Sequence record: NC_028999.1
Strand: one strand, 5' to 3'
Length of the DNA: 64,000 nucleotides
A program made the position numbers and the translations under genes. How positions within the stretch are numbered: position 1 is the first letter of the stretch; each line of letters starts with the position of its first letter. Below the pieces are notes generated by a model that saw only the letters and a list, made by a program, of their open reading frames with translations, was not told the DNA's origin and did no database searches. Positions 7,165-58,265 of this stretch are shown in pieces.

Positions 7165-8700
7165 ATGTTTGAATTATTGCTAGGTGCTAGATTAGCTAGA
7201 CCTCCATTGGTTGATAACCGCTTTATCGGAGAAGTAAGTCCTTCTTCGTTTATTACCGCAAGCGCTTTGGCTAGTGCAGTCGGCCTATTAGCTGGAGCAA
7301 ACGTTAATGATGCTATCCCATGGTTACAATTTCGTTTTAATGGCAAGGACTATTACACCCCCAAAAAAGCCATTCGACACACAATTAGCTGGGAAGCATT
7401 AAATTCGGCGAGTCTGATCACTGGGAATAAACTAACCAAAATTGCCTCTAAGTTTTATTCGGTTAGGTTGTTTAAAGGAGCTAGCGTTAATCCGGTAACG
7501 GTTACGAGTGGTTATGACCTGGTACAGTTCCAAGGTTCAGAATGGAACAAATTCATGTACCATATCCACGGCCCTAGCTTCGCTAACCCAAGCAACACAA
7601 TGGCATCTGAACCCCTTGCTGGTGAGTGGGCTCAATACAGTGATGCTGACTTGGGTTTAGGGTATCCCGCTGATGGTGGCGCCGCTACATGGACACAAGA
7701 ACTCTACACCAAATCTGGTGATGCTACTAAGTATGCCGTGTGGCGCGGATACAATGGTGTGTCTTACTGTGGTTATGACGTATCTAACCTGGCGAGTCAG
7801 AGTTATGCTGGATGGCGCCCATTGTTGGAGCAAGTGGCCGATACATTCAAACCGACTGTCAAGACCATCGCTAGTGAAGCGATGGGTAATGGTTGCTGGT
7901 TTGTTTGGAACAACGACATTTATTTCGCTGGCGGTAACGGGTCTCAACAAACCGCAAGGATTATAAAAGTAGATAAGACAACCGGTGCCAGGACGGCTGT
8001 TCCTGTTGGCACGGGGTCTACACCGGCAGCGACATGGTACTGGTCATGTGCAGTTATTGGAGATAAGGTATATTTCTTTGGCGGTCAATCAGCTGCTGGT
8101 TCTGCAAACGCAGCTCAAAATGCCTGTGTGTTCGATATGGTGACACAGGTATGGACCACCCTTGCAAATCTTCCTGAAAAATTATACAGGCCCCGTGTAG
8201 CGGCGATTGGTACTAAACTCTACATCTACGGTGGTGGACTGGTTACTCCTCGCGACACACTGTACGAATATGATCCACAAGGTAACACCTACGTCAAGAA
8301 AGCTCATGGCGGTGAAAACGCATCGGATACAGCTGGACTAGCTGTGACCTCAGACGGTACTTACCTGTATGCCTGTGGTGGTTACTATAATGCCATGTCT
8401 AACAAGCTGAAGCGTTATAACCCAACATCTAATACCTGGGATGTCCTCCAAGCAGCACCTGTAGCCAACTACGAGAATGGTATTGGAATAGCTGGTGACA
8501 TTCTGTTGTCGGTAGGTGGTACTGGGACCAATATGGGACAAAAGGTATACATGTACCTGTTCTCTAAAAATGCGTGGGTGGATACAGGTATAACCCTACC
8601 ACTTTCTTATGCGACGGCGTATTCAACTGTTCTGAATATAGACGGAAAATGGTACGCATTCTCCCAGCAGAATGCATCCCTTGGAGAAATTGGTGGCTGA
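7165..8700 (+). CDS. virion structural paralog with C-terminal Kelch beta-propeller (putative tail/receptor-binding)
   Basis: MFELLL start; family motifs WLQF, EWNKFMY, ADLG, GWRPLLE; Kelch repeats (YFFGG, YIYGG, YACGG, LSVGG). Confidence 0.8.
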   Translation: MFELLLGARLARPPLVDNRFIGEVSPSSFITASALASAVGLLAGANVNDAIPWLQFRFNGKDYYTPKKAIRHTISWEALNSASLITGNKLTKIASKFYSVRLFKGASVNPVTVTSGYDLVQFQGSEWNKFMYHIHGPSFANPSNTMASEPLAGEWAQYSDADLGLGYPADGGAATWTQELYTKSGDATKYAVWRGYNGVSYCGYDVSNLASQSYAGWRPLLEQVADTFKPTVKTIASEAMGNGCWFVWNNDIYFAGGNGSQQTARIIKVDKTTGARTAVPVGTGSTPAATWYWSCAVIGDKVYFFGGQSAAGSANAAQNACVFDMVTQVWTTLANLPEKLYRPRVAAIGTKLYIYGGGLVTPRDTLYEYDPQGNTYVKKAHGGENASDTAGLAVTSDGTYLYACGGYYNAMSNKLKRYNPTSNTWDVLQAAPVANYENGIGIAGDILLSVGGTGTNMGQKVYMYLFSKNAWVDTGITLPLSYATAYSTVLNIDGKWYAFSQQNASLGEIGG

Positions 8701-8701
8701 T

Positions 8702-9337
8702 ATGATGGAATCAATATTGGGGACCATTGCGTCACCAGGTGACAACTTAGTACCAGGTCCCCAAGCTGTCGTAGCTGGCGACACCACCTATGGATATTAC
8801 GGGGAATTCTCTGGTGGCCTTCCGCAACCACAAGCATTGTGTGATCTAGTGAATGCCACTGAAGGCGGCTTACTGGTTACGTCAACGACATGGTTGAAGT
8901 TCTGCGATGGCGGTAAGATCTACTTCATGACCAAGGTTCCGATTAGGAATAACATGCGGTGGTCTGAGCTGGACGCCAAAGGCCTCGTTACCGGTAAACA
9001 AATTACAATCGGCAAGCATACGTACATCTGTCGTATCATGACCGGCATTGCAGATAAGGCCGCTGGCACAGCGGGTGGAGAATGGAACCGCTGGATGTAT
9101 CCATTGTGTACTACCCGACCCAGTGGCCCAGTTTGGGCTAACTTCACAGTAACGCAATTGGGCGTCACATCGACCACTAATGGTGGTGGTGCTAACTGGG
9201 TACAAGAAGAACAAACCTCTGCTCCTGCTTATCACTACTACCGGGGATTTACGGGTATTGCAGTGGTGGGTAAAGAGGTAAGCAATTCGAACATCGGCAA
9301 CTACGGCTGGCGTCCAATATTGGAACTTGTAAACTGA
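8702..9337 (+). CDS. virion structural paralog (N-domain only)
   Basis: PGPQAVVAG, GYYGE, WLKF, EWNRWMY, GWRPILE. Confidence 0.8.
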   Translation: MMESILGTIASPGDNLVPGPQAVVAGDTTYGYYGEFSGGLPQPQALCDLVNATEGGLLVTSTTWLKFCDGGKIYFMTKVPIRNNMRWSELDAKGLVTGKQITIGKHTYICRIMTGIADKAAGTAGGEWNRWMYPLCTTRPSGPVWANFTVTQLGVTSTTNGGGANWVQEEQTSAPAYHYYRGFTGIAVVGKEVSNSNIGNYGWRPILELVN

Positions 9338-9347
9338 GGAGAGAGAA

Positions 9348-10019
9348 ATGTTGGAACTAATGCTCTCTTTGGGCAAACCTATATCTATCGTTGAAGGCGA
9401 CAACGGCCCAGGTCCCACTACTTTAGTCGCTGGTACTTCCCTTGCGGGGTATTTTGGTCTGGTACCCTCCGCCAGTTTAATTGGTGGTGATGCGCTTGCT
9501 ACACTGACTGGCATGACTGCTGGTACTTTACAGAACGACACTACCCCGTGGATGAAATTTGCATACAACAACAAAGCATTGTTCATTGCACAGAAGTCTA
9601 TTCGGTATGGCATGTCGTGGGACAGCTTAAACGCAGCAGCGGTGGCTACACCAGGTAAGACGATCACCATTGGTAACTATCGCTATAAGTGTCGTCTGCT
9701 GTTGATTGCCCCGGCTGACTCAGGTAACTCTAACTCCACGTTACCTGGACGGGAATGGTCTAACCTTATTTACAACGTCTGTACGGCTGGACCCTCTACC
9801 AAGGGTTGGGCCGCATTTACTACTGCCGACCTCGGTATTGGCGGTAGCTTCAATGGTCGATATAACTGGGGTCAAGAATCCGGTACAGCAACGTCAGGTG
9901 CTGGTCGAGCAGGCGTGGGTTACACCACAATTAACAAACTCGACTTCAATGCGTCTGGTAATACCGGTACGCACATGGGATGGAGACCATGCTTGGAACT
10001 GGTTGGTAAAATAGCATAA
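9348..10019 (+). CDS. virion structural paralog (N-domain only)
   Basis: PGPTTLVAG, GYFG, WMKF, EWSNLIY, ADLG, GWRPCLE. Confidence 0.8.
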   Translation: MLELMLSLGKPISIVEGDNGPGPTTLVAGTSLAGYFGLVPSASLIGGDALATLTGMTAGTLQNDTTPWMKFAYNNKALFIAQKSIRYGMSWDSLNAAAVATPGKTITIGNYRYKCRLLLIAPADSGNSNSTLPGREWSNLIYNVCTAGPSTKGWAAFTTADLGIGGSFNGRYNWGQESGTATSGAGRAGVGYTTINKLDFNASGNTGTHMGWRPCLELVGKIA

Positions 10020-10273
10020 CGACATAAAGCCCTCCCCAAAGGGAGGGCCATTATGCTGTCTAGAAGTAACGATCGGTCGTCATGAGTAAATTCAATATTC
10101 ATATTAAGAATCTTAGAGACATCATCACTTAATGATCTAAAATTATTAATATCTATTTTTTGATTATCTAGTTTATCCCGAATTTTTATTAGATGTTCTT
10201 CTATCAATGGACCTAAGTCCCGCTTGACATTAACATCCAATACCTCATTAGAGATTTTTATCGTATGTGGCAT
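9920..10273 (-). CDS. AT-rich hypothetical protein, possibly a remnant
   Basis: The first ~70 aa look protein-like; the frame then runs through the terminator into the opposite gene. Confidence 0.4.
   Translation of the reverse strand: MPHTIKISNEVLDVNVKRDLGPLIEEHLIKIRDKLDNQKIDINNFRSLSDDVSKILNMNIEFTHDDRSLLLDSIMALPLGRALCRYAILPTSSKHGLHPMCVPVLPDALKSSLLIVV
10021..10060. terminator. stem-loop terminator (possibly bidirectional)
   Basis: GACATAAA-GCCCTCCC-CAAA-GGGAGGGC-CATTATGC. Confidence 0.75.
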
Positions 10274-10374
10274 TTTATATCTCTACTAGTATTAATTTGC
10301 AATCATAAAGATATGGCTGTGTTGTATAGAATTCAATCTTACGCATGACGTATTATAAAAGAGAGGCACACAAA

Positions 10375-11889
10375 ATGTTTGAATTATTGTTGTCTTCTGG
10401 ACTAACAAATACCCCTATATATGCTGATCCTTATCCAGGTCCTAAAACACTAATAGCCGGAACAAGGGAATTGGGTTTATATGGTGAAACGTCGTCATCT
10501 GAATTATTTGGATATGACGATGCTGCTAAATTAGTTAATATGACATTTGGTACAGTTATTAATGAAGGGCAACCATGGTTAAAATTTTCCAATAACCATA
10601 TTACCTGCTACATTCCAAAAATGCCTGTACGTAAATCTATACAGAAATCACGTCTAAATAGTGCTGGTTTACGTAATGGTGATTATGAAGTTAGATTTAT
10701 GGGTAATATCTATAAATTTGGTTTATTAACAATGGTTGGTGCCGCATCTGAATGGCAAAGGTTATTATACAATGTCCATGTGTCTAATCTTAACGGAGCA
10801 AACTGGCCATATAAATTTACTGATAATGAATTAGGTATAAACCAAGCTGTTGCTGGTGGTATAAGTACTGATGGTACAACTAACTGGGGAAGAGATGCGG
10901 GTGCTAACCCATCTATTGACCAAATATATCGCGGCTATTATGCAATTGATGTAACTAGTGCATCTAGTAGTGAAACTGGTGCTGTTACGCAAGGATGGCG
11001 TCCAGTTATTTATGCAAGTGGCACGTATCCATTTGTTAAGAACAATGTTATTAAAATTGCTAATTTTGAAACAGATACCGAAATGGTAGCAGGTGCACAG
11101 ATTGGTAATTTGGTTTATTACTATGGCGGCAAAAATACAGCTAACTCTAACTTACGTATTTTAAATTTAGATACAGGTAAGTTAACAGTATTACAACCTA
11201 ATGGAACCCCTATAGCTGTTAAGCAATGTTCGGCAACAGCATTTAATGGGAAAGTATATTTTTATGGTGGCGAAAGTTCTACCGCTAATGTACTTACTAA
11301 AGACATGCAGTGTTATGACCCAGCTACTAATACATGGGAAATAAAATCACCAGGTACTATCACATGTCGTTATGCACGCTCCACTAGTCTTAACGGTTTA
11401 ATTTATATAATGGGTGCTGCCGATAATAATGCTACTAGTAATCGTGGATTCACATTGATTTATAATCCAGTTACTGATGCATATACCAGTGGAACACCAT
11501 TTAATGATACCGGTACTTATACACAAGACTATTCAGTAGGTGTGTATAATAATAGTGTATGTGTTATAGGTGGTATGGTTGGGACTGGTGTCAACACTGG
11601 CATTATCTCTTATAATCAGACTAACAATAATTGGTCTAAACCAATAACCACGGGTATACCTCTTGGTTCAGCAATTAATATACGACCAACTGGTGAACTG
11701 TATGTGATTGCAGGTGAGAACCAAAATAATGCACCAATTAAGTATTATGAGCCACGTTTATCACGTTGGATAAATTTAGGTAGTTTAGAAAATGGTCTGA
11801 TAGATTCTGGTTTTGCTAATACGTTTAATAACGCTGGTAAGTTATATGTTCTAAATGGTAATCAAGATTCAAAATACCAAGTTAGTTAA
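10375..11889 (+). CDS. AT-rich virion structural paralog with Kelch propeller
   Basis: MFELLL start, PGPKTLIAG, WLKF, EWQRLLY, GWRP; Kelch repeats (YYYGG, YFYGG, VIGG). Confidence 0.8.
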   Translation: MFELLLSSGLTNTPIYADPYPGPKTLIAGTRELGLYGETSSSELFGYDDAAKLVNMTFGTVINEGQPWLKFSNNHITCYIPKMPVRKSIQKSRLNSAGLRNGDYEVRFMGNIYKFGLLTMVGAASEWQRLLYNVHVSNLNGANWPYKFTDNELGINQAVAGGISTDGTTNWGRDAGANPSIDQIYRGYYAIDVTSASSSETGAVTQGWRPVIYASGTYPFVKNNVIKIANFETDTEMVAGAQIGNLVYYYGGKNTANSNLRILNLDTGKLTVLQPNGTPIAVKQCSATAFNGKVYFYGGESSTANVLTKDMQCYDPATNTWEIKSPGTITCRYARSTSLNGLIYIMGAADNNATSNRGFTLIYNPVTDAYTSGTPFNDTGTYTQDYSVGVYNNSVCVIGGMVGTGVNTGIISYNQTNNNWSKPITTGIPLGSAINIRPTGELYVIAGENQNNAPIKYYEPRLSRWINLGSLENGLIDSGFANTFNNAGKLYVLNGNQDSKYQVS

Positions 11890-11936: not shown

Positions 11937-12305
11937 TTAGTAACCCTCATTCAACAGATCGGATAATGCTCTAGCTTGAGAAATATCAGTGGAAGCAAAT
12001 ACGTCAGAAAGATAATAATCATGATCTTTTGCATTCTGACGTAATTCATTCATTAGTTGTTTATTGGATACAGCCCAAATTCTCCATAAGTCTTTATAGT
12101 CCTCATACTTAGGATTATACCCATCTAATGGAGGTTTACCTTTCCCTGCTTTCCAATTATTGGAATGTATTCTGTATCCTTTACAGTCTAATTGCCAAGC
12201 TTCCTCAATCGTTCGTCCATCCGGTAGCCGAGCAAACAGGGCAGAGAATCGTTTGTCGCCAACGGAGGAACATTCGTATCCTCCGCGACGCTTCCACCGA
12301 TACAT
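11937..12305 (-). CDS. NADAR-like (DarG1-type) ADP-ribosylhydrolase, putative
   Basis: ECSS..FSAL..TIEEAWQ..K and LSDVFASTDISQARA parallel the DarG1 motifs EISS..LSAFN..TVESAFQ and FTDIEF..SINCQARA. Confidence 0.65.
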   Translation of the reverse strand: MYRWKRRGGYECSSVGDKRFSALFARLPDGRTIEEAWQLDCKGYRIHSNNWKAGKGKPPLDGYNPKYEDYKDLWRIWAVSNKQLMNELRQNAKDHDYYLSDVFASTDISQARALSDLLNEGY

Positions 12306-12541
12306 TACTTTGGGGGTTGAGTTTCCTTGTGTTTTAGGTAAGCTGCCAGCATGTTATCCAGTTTGGCACCTTTCATGATCTTCTGTGCAATTTCGATACC
12401 GTTGACTCGACCCCCTGTCAGGTTCACACCCACTTCACGACGATCATGTTCAGAGATGTCTTTCATTGCCGAGAACTCCATGACGGTAGTCTCACGAGCA
12501 ATGTTCAGAATCTGACTCACGTTCGGATACGTACTTACAAT
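12305..12541 (-). CDS. polB: split family-B DNA polymerase (phiKZ gp82-like), exon 2
   Basis: Begins IVSTYPNVSQILNIARETT; joined to exon 1 it gives motif A DLDIVSTYPN. Confidence 0.85.
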   Translation of the reverse strand: MVSTYPNVSQILNIARETTVMEFSAMKDISEHDRREVGVNLTGGRVNGIEIAQKIMKGAKLDNMLAAYLKHKETQPPK

Positions 12542-12885
12542 CCATACCTTCGATAGAGTTCGTTATGCTCTACCCGCGTTTACACGCTGCTCCAGGCTTT
12601 CCCTGGATGTGGAGACTATATCACCATCCTTCTCTTTCGAGGATCGGATGCTTCCTATTTCCACCCACTTGGATGTACTCCCTTACGGGATAGTCGTTGA
12701 ACGTTCTTCTCAGAGAGAAGCTTCGCTGCGGATTGCCCAATACATGTGTCTTTTACCATACCCAGTGAGTTAGACTGGCCATCTAGTATATCGCTATCTA
12801 GACTTGGTGCACATGTCTCTAAGGATTTCCCCGTCAATTAAAGAAGTTTGCATCAAGTGTTCCAACTTGATGGGACTAATATTTA
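12542..12885 (-). ncRNA. group I intron (IA2-like), ORF-less, 344 nt
   Basis: U|UAA 5' splice site with P1 U.G pair; Q AAUCCGCAGC, R GUUCAACGACUA, S GAUAUAGUC; P7.1/P7.2 helices; terminal G; splicing restores the reading frame. Confidence 0.9.
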
Positions 12886-14709
12886 ATCCAGATCAGCCAC
12901 GTGCGTAAACAAAAGTGTGTTGTAGTCGGGTAAGTCTTTGACACACTTCAGTCCGTTGGGTCCAGCCATGTACGAAGGCAGGGTAACGATCCAGGAATCG
13001 TGGCCAACAACATAGCTATCAAGATCATGAACCATCTGATCAGAGCTTGAACCAATTACACAGGGTTCAGGCCGCTTGAGATACCAGAAGTGCATGTCGT
13101 CGCACAGACGTTTCGGGTTAGAACTAAAGTTCTTGTAGTCCGAAGATTTCGAGAACAGAGTAATAGACGAAGCCAGGTCATTAATCTTTTCATCGAGTTG
13201 TTCCAGTCGAATGGAGTCGATGATGTTGTAAAGACCGTACCGGACTTTGTGGTTCTTCTGCATCTCAATGTGCCATTCGATACCTCCCAAGTAGTCAGTT
13301 TCAGCGAACTTCAGTTTACCAAAGTTCAGGCGCATCCCCACACCAAACCCAGGATGTACGTTGACACCCCAGACCAGCGAATCAACTTCTTCCCAGTGTT
13401 CTTCTCGTTCGACCTTTTCCTCACGGCGGTACTCGACTTGAACCCTCGGATCTTCCGGATCAATACCTTCTTGTAGCAGCTTCTCCTGAGCTGCGGTATA
13501 AACAGGGACATCGTTGTACGTGACGTCTACCTTATCCTTGCTCGGATCGTTGACCGACCAATATGGGTGGGCACCACTACGTTCAGCGATGGCTTTACCC
13601 ATCTTCTTCATCCAGCTGTTGAATTCCTCTTCAGTCTGAACAGTTTCCTGTTCATCCATGGAGAGTTCTTTCTTCAGGATGGCATCGAGGGCATAACTGG
13701 ATTCTTTACCTTTGGCCAATCGAGTTACACGATACGTGGCCATGGAGTCAATGCACTGGAACGACGCAGGTGCAGTAATCCAATGCCATTGGTCTTCTGG
13801 ACCTTTGGACTTGGTTACACCCGATGCCGTAGTGGTCATCGCTTGGTCTTGACGGTAATGGAAATACCGATAGTTCGGAGGAACTTGAGGATCACTGAAT
13901 ACGTTCTTCGGGTCAATGCCGTAGTTTTCCAGTGTGGTCAAGATTCGACTCATGTCGAAGTCGATATTCCAGAACGCGAAGAAGTCAGGCTTCCACTTGT
14001 GCAAACGACGCATGCAGTTGATGATGATATCAGCAGGCGAATTTACTACCTCAATTTCAATATTGAGATTACGTGCTTTTTTCAGAGTCACCAATTCTGG
14101 AATGCGTTCTAATTCGGCGAAGGTTTCGGCAACTGGGTCATCCAGATCTTTCACCCAATGCTTCAGATATGCCAGATACACGTTTTCCTTGTGTGTAACC
14201 GACATGCAGATAATCTGTCCCTCGTTCTCTTCTTCGTACACGTTGGTCTCGATGTCGCCACCGGCTACCGTGTTACGGGAAATAAGTTCCGGGTATTGCT
14301 CCCGGTAGTCGTTTTTGAGACAGCAGACTGAGCTTACGTCCGAACCGTACAGATAAGGGCTACGGCTCAATTGGCGCATACGTGGGTTAGGACCCATTGA
14401 GTAATCGCCTAACAACTTAGCGATCATACGTGGCATCTCCAGTTGAGTACAGGTGTACTTCTGGAGGTTACGTTCAAATTCGTAATCTTTCTTTTCTTTA
14501 TGATTTTGTCTTCCCTTCTGTGTAATCCAGAAGGGACGTTTGTAGTCTTCAACGACCCGAATACGTGGGATACGACGTTTGTCTTTAAGGTGAATGATTT
14601 CTTTGACTACGTGTGCATCATGCCTACGGCCAGTTTGGTCAGTCACATAAGTGATGTGTTTGGCTTCAATACCAACAACATCTTCTTTTGTAAATTGTAG
14701 GTCGGACAT
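12886..14709 (-). CDS. polB: split family-B DNA polymerase, 3'-5' exonuclease part (phiKZ gp82-like), exon 1
   Basis: ExoI DIET, ExoII WNIDFD, ExoIII YNIIDS; ends HVADLD at the intron; spliced product about 686 aa. Confidence 0.88.
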
Positions 14710-30894: not shown

Positions 30895-32403
30895 ATGTCC
30901 AGTGCATTGCAACGCTACCTGAGTCAGGAAGAGTACGACGAAGCTCCCGTACCGACTGATGTGGTAGTTGAAGGCGGCGATTCTGCTATCGACGCCCAAG
31001 AAGTAGAAGTAATTGCCGGTCCGACGCCGGCAGTTGTAGAGGGAGCTATCGAGCCGACGCCGATCACTGAAGTTCTCCCCGAACCGACTCCGGCTCCACT
31101 ACCTGAAACACCTGCTGTTGTGACTAACACCGAAATGACCCCTGTTGCTGAAGTTACCACTGACATCCCTGCTGGGGCCGAACAAGAAGTCGATATCGCT
31201 GTCGATCAAGGTCTACCGCCGACTGGCGAAGAGATCCTCGACGTTGAAGCTGCTGTTGATAATGACAGTACTTTGCCGATGATGGACCACAGTCAGATTG
31301 AACAAACCATCATCGCCAACCAAGTTGACGATATGATCGAAGTTCAGCAATCGATGGAAGCTTATGCTGCTCTGCTGAAACAAACCGGTCTGGAAGGTAT
31401 CTCTCAGCAAACCGCAGCATTCCTGCGGGTGGGTCTGAAAGATGCTGAACGCAAATTGGGTGTTACGGGCCTGGTTGCCGGTCTGGAATCTTACGACGCT
31501 ACACCGCGCTCAGCTATTCAGAAAGCTACTGTATCCACAGAAGACCTGAAGGCATATGCCAAGCAGGCATTCGAGAAAGTGATGGAGCTTATCCGTAAAC
31601 TACTCGCTGCTATCGCCTCTGGTTTTGAAAGCCTTATGTCAGGTATTGTTGAAACTGAACACAAGCTTAATCTGCTGGAACAAGCAGCTGAGCAACTGCG
31701 TGGTAAAGAAGCACCGAATGCTGTTGTTCCACTGAATGATCCACTGTTGTTCGCCGGCACTAAGCTGAAATTCAAAGATACCAAATCTCTTTCGGGTCTG
31801 GCACATTTCAGTTCGTACGCCTATCCTGCCGCTGTGAAGAAATATTACGAAGGCCTGGGTACTCTGGTTAAGGGCTGGGATCCGATCAAGGGTAATGCCG
31901 ATGATCTGGTCGAGAAGCTGACTAGCGCCACCGCACCTCTGGACGATCTGTACAGCGATAATGAAATCCTGCCAGGTAATATGGTAATCGATATCGCTGC
32001 CGATGGCATTGTCTATGGCCTACGTAAAGATGAAACACAAGACGATCAGGTCAGTGGTAAGCTTACGGTTCGATCTGTTCCTGAGATCAAACAACACCTG
32101 AAGAAACTCTCGGACATCATCAAGATTAACAAAGCTGCTAAAGCGGAGCATGAGAAGATTGCTGAAGGTGCTAAGACCCTGACCGATGCAGGCAAAGCAC
32201 TGGAAGCAAAACTGGGTAGCGCTGAACTGGATCCGAGTTCCAAGGCTGAGATTCAGAAAGTACTTAACACTATCGCTGATCTGGTTCGTACTTCTAACCC
32301 GCGTAGCAAACAGATCACCCACTACGTCATCCGTGTAGTGAGTGCACATCTGAAAGTGATCAAAGCTGAACTGTCCAGCTACACCAAGAAAACTGGTGAA
32401 TAA
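30895..32403 (+). CDS. internal head paralog (phiKZ gp93/gp95-family)
   Basis: SMEAYAALLKQTGLEGISQQTAAFL...GLESYDATPRSA...STEDLK. Confidence 0.8.
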   Translation: MSSALQRYLSQEEYDEAPVPTDVVVEGGDSAIDAQEVEVIAGPTPAVVEGAIEPTPITEVLPEPTPAPLPETPAVVTNTEMTPVAEVTTDIPAGAEQEVDIAVDQGLPPTGEEILDVEAAVDNDSTLPMMDHSQIEQTIIANQVDDMIEVQQSMEAYAALLKQTGLEGISQQTAAFLRVGLKDAERKLGVTGLVAGLESYDATPRSAIQKATVSTEDLKAYAKQAFEKVMELIRKLLAAIASGFESLMSGIVETEHKLNLLEQAAEQLRGKEAPNAVVPLNDPLLFAGTKLKFKDTKSLSGLAHFSSYAYPAAVKKYYEGLGTLVKGWDPIKGNADDLVEKLTSATAPLDDLYSDNEILPGNMVIDIAADGIVYGLRKDETQDDQVSGKLTVRSVPEIKQHLKKLSDIIKINKAAKAEHEKIAEGAKTLTDAGKALEAKLGSAELDPSSKAEIQKVLNTIADLVRTSNPRSKQITHYVIRVVSAHLKVIKAELSSYTKKTGE

Positions 32404-32451
32404 TCATAACGACGGGGCTCTTCGGAGTCCCGTCTTATGCTAGGAGTTGTT

Positions 32452-33582
32452 ATGTCGATTGAACTCGATCTGGATACACCGATTATTAAACAACCGATCG
32501 CTGAACCAGACTACAATAATGTTACTGCTGAAAAGCTGTCTGAACTCATGGAGACCTCTCCGGAGATTGCCGCTAAGATCATCGAACTGATGGGCAGTAA
32601 TGAGGCGTATGCTGAATACAAACACGCACTAAGACAAACTTTAAGCCTCGATGTGAGTACTGAGGATTTCAAAGAAGAGTTCGCCAAACTACTCGACCGA
32701 ATTCTGGCCTTCTTAAAAGCGATGGCTAAGGATCTGTTCGACGGTACCGCCGGGATGGCGTTGACCATGGAACGTATTATGTTGCGTGCTGATCGGCTGC
32801 AAACAGATGCGCGTTCGGTAGCACGTCGTGATAAAGCAACTACGTTCAAGATCAATACTCGAATACAGAACCTGTGTGTGCGTTATCGTCCTATCACTGA
32901 AGTGCAGGGATTGTTCTCCGCACTGCGTAATCTGGACATTGTGGCTCGTACCTACTACGAATTCCAGAACAGTCAAATGCTTTCGGCTAGCCTCCGTATT
33001 CCCAACGTTATTAACAACGAAGGAGAACTAGCAAATGTCATTGAAACAATTATGTCCGTTAATCCTGTCGGGATGGCTGCCAATAATCAGTTGTTCCGTC
33101 ATAGCGGATACCGTCATGAAAGTATCCACCTCCTTGGTAACCGCCAATTGGTCGTGGTTGACAAACGCCCTGACGGCGGTCAAGTCGATCGTCTCTTAGG
33201 GATTGAAGTAAAGCTGGATGATTCTGAACGAGATCCCCTACCATTACCAGAAGAGATCACGTTCCAACGATTCTCCACTTCCATTGAAGTATCTTTGCTG
33301 CGTCAGGTAGTAAAGACTGCTGAGATGCTTAACCGAGCTAATAACCTTTCCACTCGTCATCGCCGCCGCGATCGTATTAATCAATTGACTGCGATTGTGA
33401 ACAAAGTGCGCGATAATCTCCAGACTGATCAACTAAGGGATGTGAGTGAGGATAGCTATAGGCTCTTCGTTCGGGTAATTGAAGCTTATATTGACTGGCT
33501 AGCGAATCCATACCTGGGGTTCATGGCGTTGTGTGCACGCGATCTCACGGCCATTTTGAATGTCTGTGAAGCCAATATTTAG
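32452..33582 (+). CDS. internal head protein (gp96 position)
   Basis: SNE and STE sites, then DFKEEFAKLLDRILAFLK. Confidence 0.72.
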   Translation: MSIELDLDTPIIKQPIAEPDYNNVTAEKLSELMETSPEIAAKIIELMGSNEAYAEYKHALRQTLSLDVSTEDFKEEFAKLLDRILAFLKAMAKDLFDGTAGMALTMERIMLRADRLQTDARSVARRDKATTFKINTRIQNLCVRYRPITEVQGLFSALRNLDIVARTYYEFQNSQMLSASLRIPNVINNEGELANVIETIMSVNPVGMAANNQLFRHSGYRHESIHLLGNRQLVVVDKRPDGGQVDRLLGIEVKLDDSERDPLPLPEEITFQRFSTSIEVSLLRQVVKTAEMLNRANNLSTRHRRRDRINQLTAIVNKVRDNLQTDQLRDVSEDSYRLFVRVIEAYIDWLANPYLGFMALCARDLTAILNVCEANI

Positions 33583-33629
33583 ACCAATTATCTGAAACAC
33601 CGATTTAACCTGTACAGAAGGTATTCAAC

Positions 33630-36191
33630 ATGTTGAAAAGTCTGCACAAATACCTCGCCTCTGTCGAAGAATTCGACGAGACTGAAGGTACTCCGGCAGA
33701 GCCGCCCATGGCGGAAGAAGTGGATGCGACTGCGGTCACTACGTCTGCTGAACCGGAGGTTGATGTACAAGAGGCTGGGGACGATGTAGGTCAAGCTACC
33801 CCCACCGAAGAGATCGCTCCCGATGGCGATCTGGAAGTCGTAGAAGAGAAGCCTGTGGTTCCGGAGCCCATGGCTACTACAAACGAATCCACCGCCGTAG
33901 CAGAAGCTACTGCAATCGGAGAACAAAAACAGGCTGACGTCCAGAGTCTGGTAGACCAAGCTGAACAACTACAAGCCACATCCGCTGATATTGTCAGTGA
34001 GGCTGCTGCTGAAGTTGAAGAAGGCGCTACCGACATTAATGGCAATGGCATCACGGAAGATCAAGCCGAATCCAATTCCAACGCAGAGGCCCTGACAGCA
34101 GAAGCTGAAGCCGAAGCGGTACAGGCCGAGGAGACCCCGGTCGAAGTCGAAGGTGCTGATGATGCAGAAAGCGGCAACACTGAAGCCGAGGCCAGTGGAG
34201 ATGACGACGCCCCTACAACTGACGAAAATACAGATAGTGGGAGCGATGATCTCAGCGGTGATACTGATGTTGACCTTGGTGGGTCTGGCGACAATGTTGC
34301 CGCTACTGATGATACCGGTATTACTGAAACGGGGCCCGAAACTGAAGTGGGGGAACTGGGTGCAGGTGAAGGTGAATCCGACGACACTGATGTAGTCGAA
34401 GAAGCCGAAACAGAGCTAGAGAGCAACGATGAGTCTGATCTCTCTGAAGAAATCCCCGCTACCGACAGTGAACCTGTGGTAGAAGAAGTCGTAGAAGAAA
34501 ATGCTCCGACTGAAACCGAAGCACTCGTCAATAACGAGGGGGAAACCGAAGAAGAGGTAAATATTCCTCCAGAAGCCGAAGAGATTCCGGCTGAGGAACT
34601 CCCCGAGGGTGGTGATGTTGTTGAGACACCTGAAGAAATTGAGGAAGCTGCTGAAACAGCTGAAGATGTTTCTGATGATGTCGAAGAAGTTGAAGCTGCC
34701 AAAGCCGAAGCTGAAACCAATGCCCCCACCGAGATCGTTGATGAAATCGCTGAAGCGGCTGAGACAGTAGAAGAAGAGACTGGCGTTGACCCGCTGGATA
34801 CTCAAGCTTCTTTCGACGCAGTCGACGAAGCTGCTGCTGCTGAAAACAAAGATGAACCGGTCGTCGAGGAAGTCGAAGAACCGGCCATCGACGTAGAGGC
34901 TGGTGAAATCGAAGAGACTGATGAAGAAGCAGATCTCGATGAAGGCGAACTGGACATTCCAGACGTTGACACTGACACCACCGAAGAAGACGTGGCTGAG
35001 GCAGAAGCGGAAGCTGATGACATCGAACTGGAAGCAGATGAAGACGAGGCAAAAGCTATTGATGCGTCTCGCACTATTGCTGATCTGCAAAAGGAACAAA
35101 CTACGGTAGAAGAGTTCATCGAGCTTCTGAAGTTCGGTCTGGAAAGCGAGCAGTTCTCTATCCAAACTGTGATCCTTGCTCAAGATAAGCTTGACAAACT
35201 ACATGACGCCTTCGGTAAATATTCTCCGGGTATTCCTTCCATGGAAGACTATGGTAAGGATGATCTGGATAAGTATTACATGACGTCTCTGGAAAGCTTC
35301 CGAGGTTTCATCTCCAAGATCAATAACCTGCAACGGTCACTGCATGAGAAGGTTGAGCGTTGGTGGCATGGCGGCATCGTCACTAAAATCGATGCCCGTT
35401 CTAAAGCCATCAACAAAGATATCGACCTGGTTCTAACCAAACTCTCGGGTGCGTCTATCCAGGGTAAGGTATCGCTCAGCGGTTTGAACTCTGACCTGGC
35501 CACCCGTGACGGTGATCTGGTTAAAGCTGTCGCTGGCGATCTGCGTGTTATTTCGGAGATTGCTATCAAGGGTCTGAAAGACTCCGAACGGCTGCAAGCC
35601 AATATCATCGATATCCTGAACAAGACCGTTACTGAGGGTGGTGGTGATAAAACTACTAATCTGCTGCAACGTGCTCTGGCTATCAAACCTGCTCAGTTCC
35701 TGCCGATCGCATTCACGGCTGGTTCCATGTTGGGGGGCTGGGTTCTGGAATCGCGTGGGGTTATTGAAGGTGATTCCACAGGCAAGAAACTGCGTTCACT
35801 GGGTGATGTTGGTGTACCGGCCGTCAAGCGTACCAAAGTAGCTGACAAGGTTACTAAAGTAGAGCTTAGCAAAGCTGAACTGGCGCGCCTGCTGACTCTG
35901 GCTAAAGCATACGCTGCACTAGCTCAGAAACTGGCAGCCAGCGCTGGTATGAAGGCGGTTGATAGCTTTACCGAGAACCGCATCGTTCGTAACCGTGCAT
36001 TGGATACTGGCGCGCACGGTGGTGACGTAGTTACTCGTGCTTCGACTTGGAGTGACATCGGTGATATCGACGAACTTGCTGGAGCTCTGCTGAAGGTTTG
36101 TGCGTCGCACATTGAGGTCTACAAGTTCATTACGCAGCACTCTCTTGACGTAGCCTCCGGCATTGTCAAGCTGGCTCGTAAGGCCCTGTAA
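33630..36191 (+). CDS. internal head protein with very long acidic propeptide (gp97 position)
   Basis: About 480 aa E/D/A/T-rich region, then GLESE..SMEDY..SLESF and a helical mature domain. Confidence 0.75.
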   Translation: MLKSLHKYLASVEEFDETEGTPAEPPMAEEVDATAVTTSAEPEVDVQEAGDDVGQATPTEEIAPDGDLEVVEEKPVVPEPMATTNESTAVAEATAIGEQKQADVQSLVDQAEQLQATSADIVSEAAAEVEEGATDINGNGITEDQAESNSNAEALTAEAEAEAVQAEETPVEVEGADDAESGNTEAEASGDDDAPTTDENTDSGSDDLSGDTDVDLGGSGDNVAATDDTGITETGPETEVGELGAGEGESDDTDVVEEAETELESNDESDLSEEIPATDSEPVVEEVVEENAPTETEALVNNEGETEEEVNIPPEAEEIPAEELPEGGDVVETPEEIEEAAETAEDVSDDVEEVEAAKAEAETNAPTEIVDEIAEAAETVEEETGVDPLDTQASFDAVDEAAAAENKDEPVVEEVEEPAIDVEAGEIEETDEEADLDEGELDIPDVDTDTTEEDVAEAEAEADDIELEADEDEAKAIDASRTIADLQKEQTTVEEFIELLKFGLESEQFSIQTVILAQDKLDKLHDAFGKYSPGIPSMEDYGKDDLDKYYMTSLESFRGFISKINNLQRSLHEKVERWWHGGIVTKIDARSKAINKDIDLVLTKLSGASIQGKVSLSGLNSDLATRDGDLVKAVAGDLRVISEIAIKGLKDSERLQANIIDILNKTVTEGGGDKTTNLLQRALAIKPAQFLPIAFTAGSMLGGWVLESRGVIEGDSTGKKLRSLGDVGVPAVKRTKVADKVTKVELSKAELARLLTLAKAYAALAQKLAASAGMKAVDSFTENRIVRNRALDTGAHGGDVVTRASTWSDIGDIDELAGALLKVCASHIEVYKFITQHSLDVASGIVKLARKAL

Positions 36192-53746: not shown

Positions 53747-54130
53747 TCATACATCCCCCAACGCTAAACGAACTAGGTCGTCGACGTCTAAATCCCAAAA
53801 GATACGGTTAAACCCAACACAGTCACACCACGCATAATCTCCATCGGGCATTGGCCAAGGTTTCTGGAAGACTTCAACCAGTACATTGTAACGCAGGTAC
53901 AGTTCATGAATCAGACCTTCACGACGCTCATTAACTTCAGCTTCAGAGATCTGATCGATTGGCCACGGGAATCCATTAGAGAGTTCAAACGAAACACTAG
54001 CAATCAGATTACGGATTGCAATAAGGTTCTGACTCGTTGAGTAAATCCGGATGGCCGTAGGACGCCTTTCCCTGGCGTTAAAAAGAATGTAGTTCTTGAT
54101 GCCTGACATCAAGCTGTCGATTGCCGCCAT
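53747..54130 (-). CDS. hypothetical protein
   Basis: AAGG RBS; 127 aa. Confidence 0.7.
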   Translation of the reverse strand: MAAIDSLMSGIKNYILFNARERRPTAIRIYSTSQNLIAIRNLIASVSFELSNGFPWPIDQISEAEVNERREGLIHELYLRYNVLVEVFQKPWPMPDGDYAWCDCVGFNRIFWDLDVDDLVRLALGDV

Positions 54131-54185
54131 TTATTCTTACCTTGTAAGGGATTGAATAAAGCCTCCCCGAAGGGAGGCCCTACTA

Positions 54186-54554
54186 TTAATTAGACCAAGC
54201 GTCATCGTCCATACCACCGATAATGCTACCCGGAACAATTTTGAGCGAGTAGTCTTCTTCTTTATCGATGTCCCATGGGATAATGCCACACGAACTGAAC
54301 GGCAGAAGAACATATTGGTCTTCTTCAGACGTCACAGTGTTCCGGTGCTTACCCCGTTGGATGGCGAGATACGATTTGCCTTTCACTTTGATGATGTGGT
54401 GGAACAGTTCTAGGTCAGGTTCCTGACCCAGTCGACGGCAACCGTCATAATAGCCTTTGTTGGCTACAACCTTCACGAAGTCTTCGGTGTTCTCCCGCAT
54501 GAGCTGGAGGGCATCAGAGCCGAGCTGGTGAGGACTGATAAACGTGATACCTCT
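54186..54554 (-). CDS. dnaB: DnaB-like replicative helicase, exon 2
   Basis: RGITFISPHQL (motif H3), then SKGKHR-like RGKHR and LLPF..GIIPWD; in frame with exon 1 after splicing. Confidence 0.87.
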   Translation of the reverse strand, partial: RGITFISPHQLGSDALQLMRENTEDFVKVVANKGYYDGCRRLGQEPDLELFHHIIKVKGKSYLAIQRGKHRNTVTSEEDQYVLLPFSSCGIIPWDIDKEEDYSLKIVPGSIIGGMDDDAWSN

Positions 54555-56344
54555 CGATGTGTTCAGTAAGGTTCGTTACACCTTACCCGCGCCATTATGC
54601 GCAGCTCCAGGCTTTCCCTGGATGTCCAGACTATATCTTCACCCTCGGTTTCCCGATAGGGTGCTTCCCACTTCGAGTTCACTTGAACTCTACTCCCCAC
54701 TACGGGATAGTCGTTGAACCTTCTCCGTGCCTTTCGGTTTAGGAGCTTGGCTGCTGATTGTCCAATTTCTACACTTGTTAAACCTTCATAGACTCCTTTC
54801 GGGTCTATTGTGGTAGTAGAACTCTGAAGGAGTTTCCAGCAATTCAGGAAGTACTCGTAAAGCATTACGGCTTTACGGCCCTAAATAAGTAACCCTTAGT
54901 TTCCTTATTAGTGCTCAGATTTAATCGAATTGTTTTCTCGTTTAGACCGGTTAGACGAGCTGCTTCTTTAATAGAAGCAACCTCAGTTATAACACCGGTA
55001 TTCACGCAGGTAACCAGAATGGCTTTAGCTTGTATTGGCTTGTCGATATACGCCGAATTATCGTACTTATTCGAATCCGTGCGGATTATCCAACGCTTAG
55101 CGTAGATGTATTTCAATCCACGACTTAGGTCGACTTGCAACTCCGCTTTAGATCTCCCACAGTGATTCGCTATCTCCTGTAAAGTAGCGAAGACATGGAG
55201 AGTATTCGTTTCTAGATCACTTACGTAGTAAGGTCCAGACAGATTATTCCTACTGTAATGAATTTCACAGTGCGGAACATGCTCTTTAAAACGAATGACG
55301 AAGTTGTCGATGGTTTCGAACCGATATGGTATTCCATACGCTGTCGCAATCTGTTTTACACGATTGAACTTCCGGCTCTGTCCAGTCCGCGTATCGAAAA
55401 CCGTTATGGTGAATATCGATTTACCAACTTTAAAATCGTTTATATCAACTGTTTCGTAATGCCATGGTGTTAAGTCATCCATGGTTTTTATTTCATACCG
55501 CTTGCCCCAAAGATAACCAGGCAGTTTAGTTTGAAAACTTACAGTTGAGTTACCTACACCAATACCGAGACTTCTGTTCATCTCGCTAATGGACCTGTAC
55601 GCAGTAACTTCTCCAGTTAGGACATCCCTAACCTTCGTACCAATAGGTGTTCCATTAAGACCGACTTCCAATGCATGCTGTGCATTTTCCGAAGCATCAC
55701 ACCATTCTAGGTTAGATACGTCGTTATTGGTCTTAACTCCATCAATATGGTTAACGAGCGGTCTTTTTACGAAACATTCGTTTGGAACCCATGCCAAAGC
55801 TACTAACCGATGAAATTTTACGGTACGATTGCAATTTCGATCGGGTACTCTGATATAACACGTGTAGTAACCTTTATCATCGAGTTTCACATCCGTGATA
55901 ATCGAATTCGTTTTGGTATCTAGCACATGCCCATTGGTATCAATAGCGTATCTTGGGTAGTTTGGTATATGCCTGAACCCATCGCAGTAGTAAATCGGTT
56001 CTGCGAATGTCATTATCTTTCCGCACCTTATTCTCAAAAGCGTGTTGTCCACGTCTTTGAAAATTATTTTGTCAAGGTGTTGGGATAGATTGGGAATGTC
56101 TTCACATTCGTACCAAGCAAGTAGACTGAGCCACTCGACTGTGACTGTATACTTTTTACCAAATAGAACGATATTAACTAATCCATTCTCTTCCGGTAGG
56201 GAAACATGTTTCCCCAATCGGTCAAATATTTGACCGTTTAAATCAATTCGGTATTCTGAACTACCAGGAATCTTTTTAATCACAGCCACACCCCAAGTTA
56301 AAAAATCAACTATAGGATATCTGTAATTAAAGGTAGGTAATTTA
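54555..56344 (-). mobile_element. group I intron (IA2-like), 1790 nt, encoding an HNH endonuclease
   Basis: CCU|UAA 5' splice site; P AAUUGCUGGAAA, Q AAUCAGCAGC, R GUUCAACGACUA, S GAAGAUAUAGUC; terminal G at 54555. Confidence 0.9.
54865..56289 (-). CDS. intron-encoded NUMOD4-HNH homing endonuclease
   Basis: IPNYPRYAIDTNG (NUMOD4), HRLVALAW, NHIDGVKTNNDVSNLEW, C-terminal NUMOD1-like SIKEAARLTG. Confidence 0.9.
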   Translation of the reverse strand: MAVIKKIPGSSEYRIDLNGQIFDRLGKHVSLPEENGLVNIVLFGKKYTVTVEWLSLLAWYECEDIPNLSQHLDKIIFKDVDNTLLRIRCGKIMTFAEPIYYCDGFRHIPNYPRYAIDTNGHVLDTKTNSIITDVKLDDKGYYTCYIRVPDRNCNRTVKFHRLVALAWVPNECFVKRPLVNHIDGVKTNNDVSNLEWCDASENAQHALEVGLNGTPIGTKVRDVLTGEVTAYRSISEMNRSLGIGVGNSTVSFQTKLPGYLWGKRYEIKTMDDLTPWHYETVDINDFKVGKSIFTITVFDTRTGQSRKFNRVKQIATAYGIPYRFETIDNFVIRFKEHVPHCEIHYSRNNLSGPYYVSDLETNTLHVFATLQEIANHCGRSKAELQVDLSRGLKYIYAKRWIIRTDSNKYDNSAYIDKPIQAKAILVTCVNTGVITEVASIKEAARLTGLNEKTIRLNLSTNKETKGYLFRAVKP

Positions 56345-57511
56345 AGGAGTGGTATAGTTCCTCATGCGACGGAACAGCAGACGAATATCATCACCTGCTA
56401 CTTTCGCATCCAGACCAGTCTTTGGTAGCATGTTCAGGTAGTCAACCATCAGCATCTGGATTTCGTAACCCTGGGACTGGAGACCATCAAGGTAGTTGGT
56501 GAAACCACCAATGGTAAATTCAGTCGGGTCAAAACGGATCATCTTAACGTTGAAACCGTTCTCTTGCAGACGTGCACAGACATAAGCCGCAGCTTCTCGT
56601 TTGTCGATGTCAGCAACAATGATCTCTTCACCCGTTTCATTCTCACGGATATACTTGTAAATAGTTAGCAAGTTATCAGAGATTTCGTTTTCCAACGTAA
56701 CAAACAGCAACAGAGGCTTCTTCGTCTTGTCACGCATGAACGGACGGTTAAACAGAGCGATGTGCGAGAACAGCAACATTAGCATGTATGACTTGAAGTT
56801 GTGTTGCAGAGCCGCAGTGGTGATAAACTCGCCTCGACGAAATGCCCCCAAGCTACCCAGGATACGGTTAAATCCTTTCCAACCTGTTTTGAATGCACCG
56901 TCAGCAGACAGAGTAGTCTGTACCTGCTCAAAGAAATCTTCTACTGCTTCAGGCTCACTGAAGTCCAAGCAACCCATTTCAGCTGGGTGTCTACTTTCAG
57001 CACGCGCTTTGACATACGGATCGAGCTTAGCGCCCATCTCGTTAATAGCACCAGCGATATCGCCACTACCGCCACGGTTGAAAAGAAGCTTCTGCGAATA
57101 CTCTCGAACGATCTGCTTGATCTTTTCATCATTGAGGTGTGCGTTCAGCGCACTGCGACGAGAGTTGATAGCCCGCATAATGGACATCCCGTCAGGGAAA
57201 TCCTCTTTTACGCCATTGACTACCGCTTCGTACAGATAGTTTTCTTCCCGGCAACTCACTTGTACGGCTTGTAGAACTTCCGCCAAACTCGGGAAATCGT
57301 GCTTTGCTTTACTGTTCAGATCACCGACGAGCTTACGTAGTTCTAAGAACGTTTGCCGACCATGGTCGTGGTCAACAGTGGTATCACGGACTTCCAGTGT
57401 ATTGATGATTTCCGATATCAGTTCAGTTGATGGTGCAGCAGGAGAATCTTCACGGTGTTCCAAGCACAGCAGGGTAACACACTGTACGAGCAGTTGTTTC
57501 GGGGAGGACAT
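56345..57511 (-). CDS. dnaB: DnaB-like replicative helicase (phiKZ gp118-like), exon 1
   Basis: GWKGFNRILG, FRRGE, divergent Walker A ALQHNFKS, VTLEN, Walker B MVDYL; spliced product about 511 aa. Confidence 0.9.
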
Positions 57512-57645
57512 TTACAGCATCCTTGAGTGTGAATTTTTTAATGATGTACCGTGTACCATTTTGTTTCTAGGTAATTTGTCGCTAAAAATAATGCATATTC
57601 CTATGTAGACTGTTTTTAAGCCTTGGTCCACTATAGGTCTTACCG

Positions 57646-58188
57646 ATGATCAAGTTACTCGTTATCCCTGAAGCTGTCTTCGATCAGTATAAAGCTGATG
57701 GCGTGGACTTTAGCAAATTGCTGTGTCCCAACTATATAGCTTCCGTAAGTTCGGTAAACGACCTTGCGGAGATTGATGCGGTTATCAACGAATTTCAGTT
57801 CCCGTTCTGCTCTGCCACTCCGATCGAGAAGGCAGAGAGTCCGGTGGTTGGGATTGCCATTAAGGCGAACTCAGATTGTGATGAACAATTCAAGATGCAA
57901 GAATTGCACAATCGTTTAGAGGAACGAATTGCCACCTTGGCACTCCGGAAAGGTAATGAACCACCTTTTGTAGGCGTTTATTACCTTTATCCTGTAGATG
58001 AGAATCTTTGGGTTGCGGTGCAGAAGAGTCTGCATACAAACAATGTCGATCCTAACCGGCTCTCTCTTAAGGCTAACCATAGCTTCTTCGATAGTATGGT
58101 TAATGAGCTGACGGCGCTACCTGGTTTCAAGTTTGAGCAGGCCGCCAACACCAATCTCTTCACTTATTATCTGGAATCACAAGGCTAA
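57646..58188 (+). CDS. hypothetical protein upstream of the capsid gene
   Basis: 180 aa; preceded by a CCTATGT late-like motif. Confidence 0.7.
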   Translation: MIKLLVIPEAVFDQYKADGVDFSKLLCPNYIASVSSVNDLAEIDAVINEFQFPFCSATPIEKAESPVVGIAIKANSDCDEQFKMQELHNRLEERIATLALRKGNEPPFVGVYYLYPVDENLWVAVQKSLHTNNVDPNRLSLKANHSFFDSMVNELTALPGFKFEQAANTNLFTYYLESQG

Positions 58189-58265
58189 CATCCGGATCAT
58201 TCCTAGCCTTGTAATTGAAAGATATTTGCTAAACCAATACCCATCCTGCGTAGGAAACAACAGAA

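Follow-up and report, generated by a model that had tools for sequence, protein, structure and literature searches.

The DNA polymerase gene gp085 of Pseudomonas phage PhiPA3, a phiKZ-like, nucleus-forming jumbo phage that serves as a model for such phages, very probably carries a self-splicing group I intron of the phage IA type that has lost its open reading frame from an HNH-carrying ancestor. We put the probability of this reading at about 0.9, judging from sequence comparison. The intron occupies positions 12542..12885 (344 nt, minus strand) of the window, the whole stretch of 64,000 nucleotides analyzed here from PhiPA3 (NC_028999/HQ630627), in which a coordinate equals the record position minus 62000. 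The main value of the finding is a corrected gene model, in which DNAP-N, the N-terminal subunit of the two-subunit replicative polymerase, has a predicted spliced length of 686 aa.

The DNAP-N gene and its exon junction

Exon 1 of the DNAP-N gene (gp085) spans 12886..14709 on the minus strand and comprises 608 codons, as defined by the open reading frame list, the RefSeq label "DNA polymerase" and a match to PHROG 3011. It encodes the Exo I, II and III motifs and the first half of motif A, with the C-terminal end ...HVADLD. Its last codons, GCT GAT CTG GAT, extend to 12886 and are followed directly by an in-frame TAA (12885-12883), the annotated gp085 ORF with its stop being 12883..14709(-). 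This UAA is the first codon of the intron, and the last intron base is the omega-G at 12542. The bases after that G, ATT GTA AGT ACG TAT CCG, open exon 2 (12305..12541, minus strand), which consists of 78 codons (IVSTYPNVSQ...QPPK) and a stop and is identified by PHROG 3011 and by alignment with the homolog of phage PS119XW. The insert itself is delimited by the Rfam group I model RF00028, by tblastn of the intron-less exons and by a minimum free energy (MFE) fold. The original prediction, made from the letters of this DNA alone, had described a 344-nt element with these limits, exon flanks and terminal G, all of which hold on the minus strand. When the flanks are joined by script they translate to ...FTHVADLDIVSTYPNVSQ..., with ...HVADLDIVSTYPN... 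as the stretch across the junction and ...LLFTHVADLDIVSTYPNVSQILNIA as a longer reading. The predicted spliced nucleotide junction is GCTGATCTGGAT/ATTGTAAGTACG, and the tryptic peptide predicted to cross it is ...HVADLDIVSTYPNVSQILNIAR.

Three independent comparisons place the same junction. The DNAP-N of PS119XW (QEM41817, 647 aa) has no insert and reads unbroken through ...FSHVADLD/IVSTYPNVSQ..., PhiPA3 exon 1 aligning with its residues 1-570 and exon 2 with residues 571-646 (82% identical). In the PHROG 3011 "DNA polymerase" profile, exon 1 covers positions 3-496 (E 5e-208) and exon 2 positions 497-571 (E 1e-22), such that positions 496 and 497 abut at the exon junction. Finally, tblastn with a 148-aa piece spanning the junction gave contiguous matches, that is, a single uninterrupted match over at least 80% of the query, in 241 of 288 phage records, with 201phi2-1 and phages of the phiKZ type among them. 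Excision of the intron restores a continuous, conserved reading frame. Alignment to intron-less homologs, put forward as a check together with the original prediction, therefore finds them contiguous at DLD/IVSTYP, and the rebuilding of DLD-IVSTYPN on excision is confirmed by the scripted join and by residues 570 and 571 of PS119XW. Around the junction, 9 of 17 nucleotides differ between HPP-Temi (intron-plus) and PS119XW (intron-less), all of them synonymously, against about 10% elsewhere in the exons. This raised divergence would fit P1 requirements, divergence of a homing site or both; in the same comparison, the U of the P1 U.G pair in the intron-plus alleles is a C in the intron-less allele.

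GenBank and RefSeq annotate a 608-aa polymerase, leave exon 2 without annotation and show an empty interval between gp085 and gp084. As publicly annotated, PhiPA3 DNAP-N is thus missing half of motif A along with 78 conserved residues, and expression or modelling of the PhiPA3 replisome needs the 686-aa spliced product. The truncated polymerase had been foreseen correctly; the false 71-aa gene that was said to accompany it is absent from the public records, and the 71-aa ORF (12305..12520), with a GTG start 7 codons past the junction, is a mechanical ORF only. The annotated 608-aa protein, the existence of this ORF and the fact that the polymerase is already multi-subunit could all be taken to mean that the insert is a dead intron relic and that the polymerase either is truly truncated or is active as 608 aa plus the 71-aa product, with no covalent join. 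A start at that GTG would, however, drop the invariant residues S573, Y575 and P576, and no homolog has a separate gene here, the homologs being either contiguous or intron-bearing. We regard such a relic as very improbable, a view to which the covariation described below also contributes.

Exon 2 is followed by gp084 (11937..12305, minus strand; 122 aa, PHROG 9995, function not known), as given by annotation and PHROG, and the ATG of gp084 overlaps the exon-2 stop codon (TAATG). Exon 2 is also trailed by a 122-aa ORF in metagenomic contig L012, and a different, 95-aa gene lies there in PS119XW. At 8672-11889 on the plus strand, three consecutive ORFs (221, 223 and 514 aa) have a common N-terminal pattern, ...GPGP..L[VI]AG...G[YL][YF]GE..., and bear the annotation of virion structural proteins, with Kelch-like repeats in the last; they resemble paralogous modules of a fibre or receptor-binding kind.

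Pfam assigned no family to either exon, the lone match (PLC-beta_C) lying below the cut-off and arising by chance, and phmmer and a 30-sequence profile run against PDB sequences gave only insignificant REV1 matches. This lack of recognition agrees with the literature, in which the phiKZ-like phages have a unique, divergent clade of family B polymerases. The assignment of motif A therefore draws on the residue pattern, invariance, Foldseek of the exonuclease part and the literature. Among 30 homologs, D158 and E160 (Exo I, DxE), N254 and D258 (Exo II, Nx3FD) and Y456 and D460 (Exo III, Yx3D) are invariant and F257 is nearly so. The stretch D570-I-V-S573-T-Y575-P576-N fits motif A (DxxSLYPS) as judged from its sequence, with D568, D570, S573, Y575 and P576 invariant in the 30 homologs, and the invariant residues S573, Y575, P576, R586, E592, R605, G608 and N617 of the same alignment fall in exon 2. 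With D570 in motif A, the intron lies directly after the codon of the presumed catalytic aspartate.

Foldseek returned RB69 gp43 as the top match (E 2.6e-12, probability 1.00), followed by T4 polymerase and archaeal PolB. The AlphaFold model is a monomer of an intron-less homolog (mean pLDDT 79.5) in which the exonuclease part exceeds a pLDDT of 90 and residues 519-616, around motif A and where the exon-2 part begins, fall below 50, so that motif A cannot be placed structurally in the monomer model. The low model confidence at 519-616 agrees with a recent preprint on the chimallivirus polymerase, according to which this region folds only with DNAP-C (bioRxiv 10.64898/2026.10.01.755736). The RB69 gp43 match and the invariance among 30 homologs together support the placing of the intron in motif A of a divergent B-family polymerase.

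In chimalliviruses the polymerase is encoded by two genes (phiKZ gp082 and gp050; Goslar gp068 and gp244), whose products, DNAP-N and DNAP-C, form an interdigitated heterodimer, and Goslar DNAP-N has been purified with DNAP-C and used in primer-extension assays (bioRxiv 10.64898/2026.10.01.755736). The PhiPA3 enzyme is split as had been proposed: DNAP-N is gp085, and the C-terminal subunit, DNAP-C, is gp047 at record positions 32133-34283, some 40 kb distant and beyond the limits of the window. This subunit is expected to hold motifs B and C (fingers, second catalytic Asp).

Ribozyme anatomy and covariation

RF00028 matches 12895..12590 on the minus strand over the full model (positions 1-253) with 71.7 bits (E 3.2e-16), above the curated gathering score of 50 bits, and thereby answers the covariance-model search suggested with the original prediction. 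The classical Q (3' strand of P4), R (GUUCAACGACUA) and S (GAUAUAGUCU) elements, which had been read from the sequence, align with the Rfam consensus, as do the P4 strands. Window positions are obtained from intron nt n as 12886 - n, and all helices lie on the minus strand.

P1 (12873..12889), seen in the sequence and in the MFE fold, pairs the exon end GGAU (12889-12886) and the following UAA with the guide UUAGUCC (12879-12873, nt 7-13). It places a U.G pair at the 5' splice site, closes with an L1 of 3 nt and is recovered by the unconstrained MFE fold; the GGAU:GUCC pairing with U.G at the splice site had been anticipated in exactly this form. The P2 hairpin (nt 14-35, 12851..12872) follows, with three to four pair types at its inner pairs among seven homologs. 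The next segment (12701..12846), defined by Rfam, pair counts and the fold, contains the 5' strand of P3 (nt 40-45, pairing with nt 230-235) and the P4-P6 domain, in which P4 (nt 50-56 with nt 154-159) has a bulged A, P6/P6a includes P6a at nt 166-180, and a P5abc-like extension is made up of a GCGA tetraloop hairpin (nt 84-104), P5c (nt 108-124) and an A-rich stretch (nt 130-137). The 3' half of the catalytic core (12613..12702), resting on the same three kinds of evidence, comprises R/J6-7 with the 5' strand of P7 (nt 184-196), the 3' strand of P3 (nt 230-235) and S with the 3' strand of P7 (nt 264-273). Here P7 is formed by nt 191-196 and nt 267-272, P7.1 has a GUAA loop, P7.2 occupies nt 211-224 and P8 has a GAAA loop. 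The 3' domain (12542..12607), based on RNAalifold and the fold, holds P9 (nt 279-295), P9.1 (nt 299-310, GUAA loop), P9.2 (nt 314-332) and a 3' tail ending in the omega-G (nt 344). P7.1 and P7.2 mark IA-type introns such as those of T4, SPO1 and Twort, and on these helices the PhiPA3 polymerase intron would be of the phage IA type.

The MFE fold has an energy of -103.7 kcal/mol with a modest z of -2.37, 1 of 100 shuffles folding equally well. Unconstrained, it recovers almost all of the helices listed and four GNRA tetraloops, and the entire 344 nt can be explained by helices of the ribozyme. The bare interruption of the ORF could also be put down to an intein, to programmed frameshifting or readthrough, or to an error of sequencing or assembly; nothing further favors these readings. 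The insert, however, has stop codons in every frame, one of them in frame at its very start; it matches an RNA model and no protein family, and homologous inserts occupy the identical position in other, independent genomes and in contigs from metagenomes. We give these readings practically no credence, and the RF00028 match and the covariation of the same-site introns refute them.

The same-site introns were collected by retrieving contigs for metagenomic DNAP-N gene calls that stop at the same residue. They fall into forms with no ORF in the P1 loop, namely PhiPA3 (344 nt), L006 (433 nt), L015 (404 nt) and L013 (440 nt), and forms with an HNH gene in the P1 loop, namely HPP-Temi (1722 nt), L012 (1774 nt) and the introns of L009 and L010, both of which are partial because the contig ends. 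The terminal U of the 5' exon pairs with the guide G throughout, the P1 U.G pair being kept in all same-site homologs examined, and each of the seven introns for which the 3' end is available closes with a 3'-terminal G, as expected of the omega-G. RNAalifold, applied unguided to seven aligned same-site introns, returned P2, P3, P6, P8, P9 and P9.2, and 40 of its 56 pairs have compensatory changes on both sides; P9.2 alone has 5 doubly compensated pairs among 7. Scripted pair counts show that all six positions of P3 are paired in 7/7 introns, with two to three pair types each, and that five of the six positions of P7 are paired in all seven, with one compensatory swap of U-A to C-G; the pairing of P4, P6, P8 and P9 is likewise kept.

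The core helices P3-P9, including the P3/P7 pseudoknot, are thus supported by covariation. Together with the covariance model, the covariation in seven same-site introns secures the group I identity that had been assigned to the element. It also means that the RNA structure is under selection, unlike that of a dead relic.

Inspection revealed no convincing canonical P10 pairing of the 3' exon AUU... with bases 5' of the guide G. Many group I introns do without P10. The gathering threshold missed the introns of Goslar, L013 and L015, which scored 44.7, 27.7 and 48.8 bits in a permissive Rfam run. The lack of a clear P10 and the sub-threshold scores of the same-site introns L013 and L015 could be taken as signs that the intron is excised in vivo and has, since the loss of its ORF, needed help from a maturase-like factor or an RNA chaperone, of either phage or host origin. 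Chimallivirus transcription takes place inside the phage nucleus, apart from ribosomes, so that translation would neither assist nor disturb the folding of the intron, and the want of ribosome-assisted folding would add to the case for a cofactor. Against such a need, the PhiPA3 core is complete and its score is above the threshold, the P5abc-like extension and the four GNRA loops are typical stabilizers of autonomous folding, and HNH endonucleases are not known to act as maturases. We judge dependence on a cofactor to be improbable and favor self-splicing.

Loss of the endonuclease and the predicted splicing reaction

No endonuclease gene is present in 12885..12542, where the only ORFs are of 42-60 aa and the 60-aa ORF has no PHROG match. 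The statement that the ribozyme has no endonuclease of its own accordingly stands: the intron has no ORF above 60 aa, no family match and an L1 of 3 nt. Its closest intron relative is that of HPP-Temi, the core being 83% identical over 98% of the length (blastn). There, a 444-aa HNH_3/NUMOD1 ORF lies between the 5' strand of P1 and the guide, its last codons overlapping the guide and P2. Where HPP-Temi reads TAAATAT, about 1.35 kb and then TAGTCCC, PhiPA3 reads TAAATAT-TAGTCCC. An HNH_3/NUMOD1 ORF is carried by the introns of HPP-Temi, L009, L010 and L012, and the four proteins are 54-57% identical over their full length, with ...LR(E/D)NIxVPS at or near the C-terminus. In the ORF-less L006 intron (L006:5163-5275) the 80-nt L1 still encodes a remnant of the HNH C-terminus, ...YNLRENVKVPSD; in PhiPA3, L015 and L013 the L1 is minimal (3-4 nt).

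The HNH genes of the relatives and the L006 remnant indicate that the ancestral same-site intron had an endonuclease and that the ORF-less forms are internal deletions, the remnant being direct evidence of such a loss. These comparisons show that the ORF-less state of PhiPA3 is a derived one, reached by deletion of the HNH gene, and not the original condition. The ancestor was probably a mobile intron whose P1 loop held the gene of an I-HmuI-like HNH/NUMOD homing endonuclease; in PhiPA3 the entire gene is deleted and a 3-nt loop is left. Loss of the ORF is the expected late stage of the homing cycle. Lacking an endonuclease, the intron would not home by itself and would be inherited vertically.

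In the reaction we propose, the exon end GGAU of the pre-mRNA would pair with the internal guide GUCC, exogenous guanosine would attack after the U of the U.G pair, and the freed exon would attack after the terminal G (12542), joining GAT to ATT. Ligation would yield the 686-aa protein, with motif A as D-L-D-I-V-S-T-Y-P-N. An unspliced message would stop at the in-frame UAA and give 608 aa, without half of motif A and the 78 conserved residues. We infer splicing, its self-sufficiency and its necessity for replication; splicing follows from the intact covarying core, the exact frame, the exon-2 invariants, the TAATG overlap and the viability of PhiPA3. Since PhiPA3 is viable its polymerase gene must be expressed, and we can soundly infer that replication depends on splicing.

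Known introns and the colonization of replisome genes

Our literature search found no description of the PhiPA3 polymerase intron. The intron of Pseudomonas phage HPP-Temi (PP968062) has the identical insertion point (ADLD/IVSTYPN), the P1 U.G pair and the 3' domain in common with it and differs in its length of 1722 nt and in the 444-aa HNH/NUMOD1 gene in L1, which in PhiPA3 measures 3 nt. The HPP-Temi record annotates the locus only as "DNA polymerase / HNH endonuclease / DNA polymerase". The DNAP-N gene of the E. coli chimallivirus Goslar, gp068, has been described as containing a self-splicing intron with the homing endonuclease gp069, and its authors made the equivalent correction of the gene model by hand (bioRxiv 10.64898/2026.10.01.755736, methods). 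In our analysis the Goslar intron (L005, NC_048170 79000-84000) is a group I intron with an E value of 2e-8 at its score below the gathering threshold. It is like the PhiPA3 intron in host gene, motif A, group and the 5' exon end GGAU, and unlike it in that the junction, VAD/LDISSSYPN, lies 6 nt upstream, the endonuclease gene is present and the core has diverged. The HNH/NUMOD1 protein gp069 is 31-35% identical to the HNH proteins of the PhiPA3 site. A paper on MIJ3 concerns an unrelated split intein.

Within PhiPA3, the well-known gp210 intron of the RNA polymerase beta-subunit gene codes for an HNH endonuclease, which is active and cleaves the allele of PhiKZ (Birkholz et al. 2024, Science; PMC11620839). 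It resembles the DNA polymerase intron in phage, in group and in lying directly after the conserved catalytic aspartates of an essential polymerase, the difference being that the DNA polymerase intron is without an endonuclease. At record positions 53811-58420, outside the window, a RefSeq misc_feature of 4.6 kb, "RNA polymerase beta subunit (fragment)", is phiKZ gp071-like and probably represents another intron-interrupted gene. A blastn search with the polymerase intron matched four places in the PhiPA3 genome, and a core match in phiKZ lies at PHIKZ072.1.

Since SPO1, phage DNA polymerase genes have been known to contain group I introns, mostly with HNH nicking endonucleases; examples are those of SPO1/SP82 (I-HmuI), Bastille (I-BasI), LUZ24 and Pf-WMP3. 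Like these, the PhiPA3 intron interrupts a conserved polymerase motif. The hosts of those introns are family A or other polymerases of unrelated phages. In the nucleus-forming jumbo phage PhiPA3, by contrast, the host is a B-family enzyme that is both split and divergent, and the intron has no ORF. The PhiPA3 intron is unannotated but is an ordinary kind of phage intron, and knowledge of group I introns is unchanged by it.

The window contains a second intron (1790 nt, 54555..56344, minus strand; Rfam 83.1 bits at 54900..54607) in the gene for a divergent DnaB-like helicase. Helicase exon 1 (56345..57511) corresponds to positions 1-239 of Pfam divDNAB and exon 2 (from 54554) to positions 240-350. 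P1 of this intron pairs CCU/UAAAU with AUUUAGGG, again with a U.G pair, and L1 holds a 474-aa HNH_3/NUMOD1/I-HmuI-like ORF (54865..56289). The ribozyme is paralogous to that of the polymerase intron, which it resembles in the P9-P9.2 3' domain and equals in P1 architecture; it differs in keeping its 474-aa HNH_3/NUMOD1 gene and in its host gene. RefSeq gp133, "putative endonuclease" (54563..54865), overlies the ribozyme core of the helicase intron, the 474-aa HNH ORF is without a CDS, and the helicase exons appear there as two genes, gp134 and gp131.

Of the best 120 DNAP-N protein clusters, 77 are full-length; the others break off at ADLD (10), at AD (13) or at ...GHDSWI (20). The AD end corresponds to the Goslar site, 6 nt upstream, and the GHDSWI end lies about 35 codons upstream; contigs confirm group I introns at all three sites. 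In contig L019, a 96-nt mini-exon lies between two group I introns (53.7 and 64.9 bits).

The same-site introns with and without HNH genes, the two further sites within 35 codons and the helicase intron together show that the replisome genes of chimalliviruses are heavily colonized by one intron/HNH family, a pattern relevant to studies of phage competition based on gp210. Speculatively, and in our estimate rather doubtfully, the ORF-less intron could be more than a decaying parasite and be kept as an "immunity allele," its split motif-A target shielding the polymerase gene from the HNH endonucleases that related chimalliviruses, HPP-Temi-like phages among them, have at this site. A further twist, equally speculative, would be that splicing in the ribosome-free phage nucleus gates or times the production of the polymerase. 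If the immunity reading is true, the allele would serve in defense as gp210 does in interference, and phages would be in conflict over the 35-codon stretch around motif A, which has three alternative insertion sites and is interrupted in about one-third of environmental alleles.
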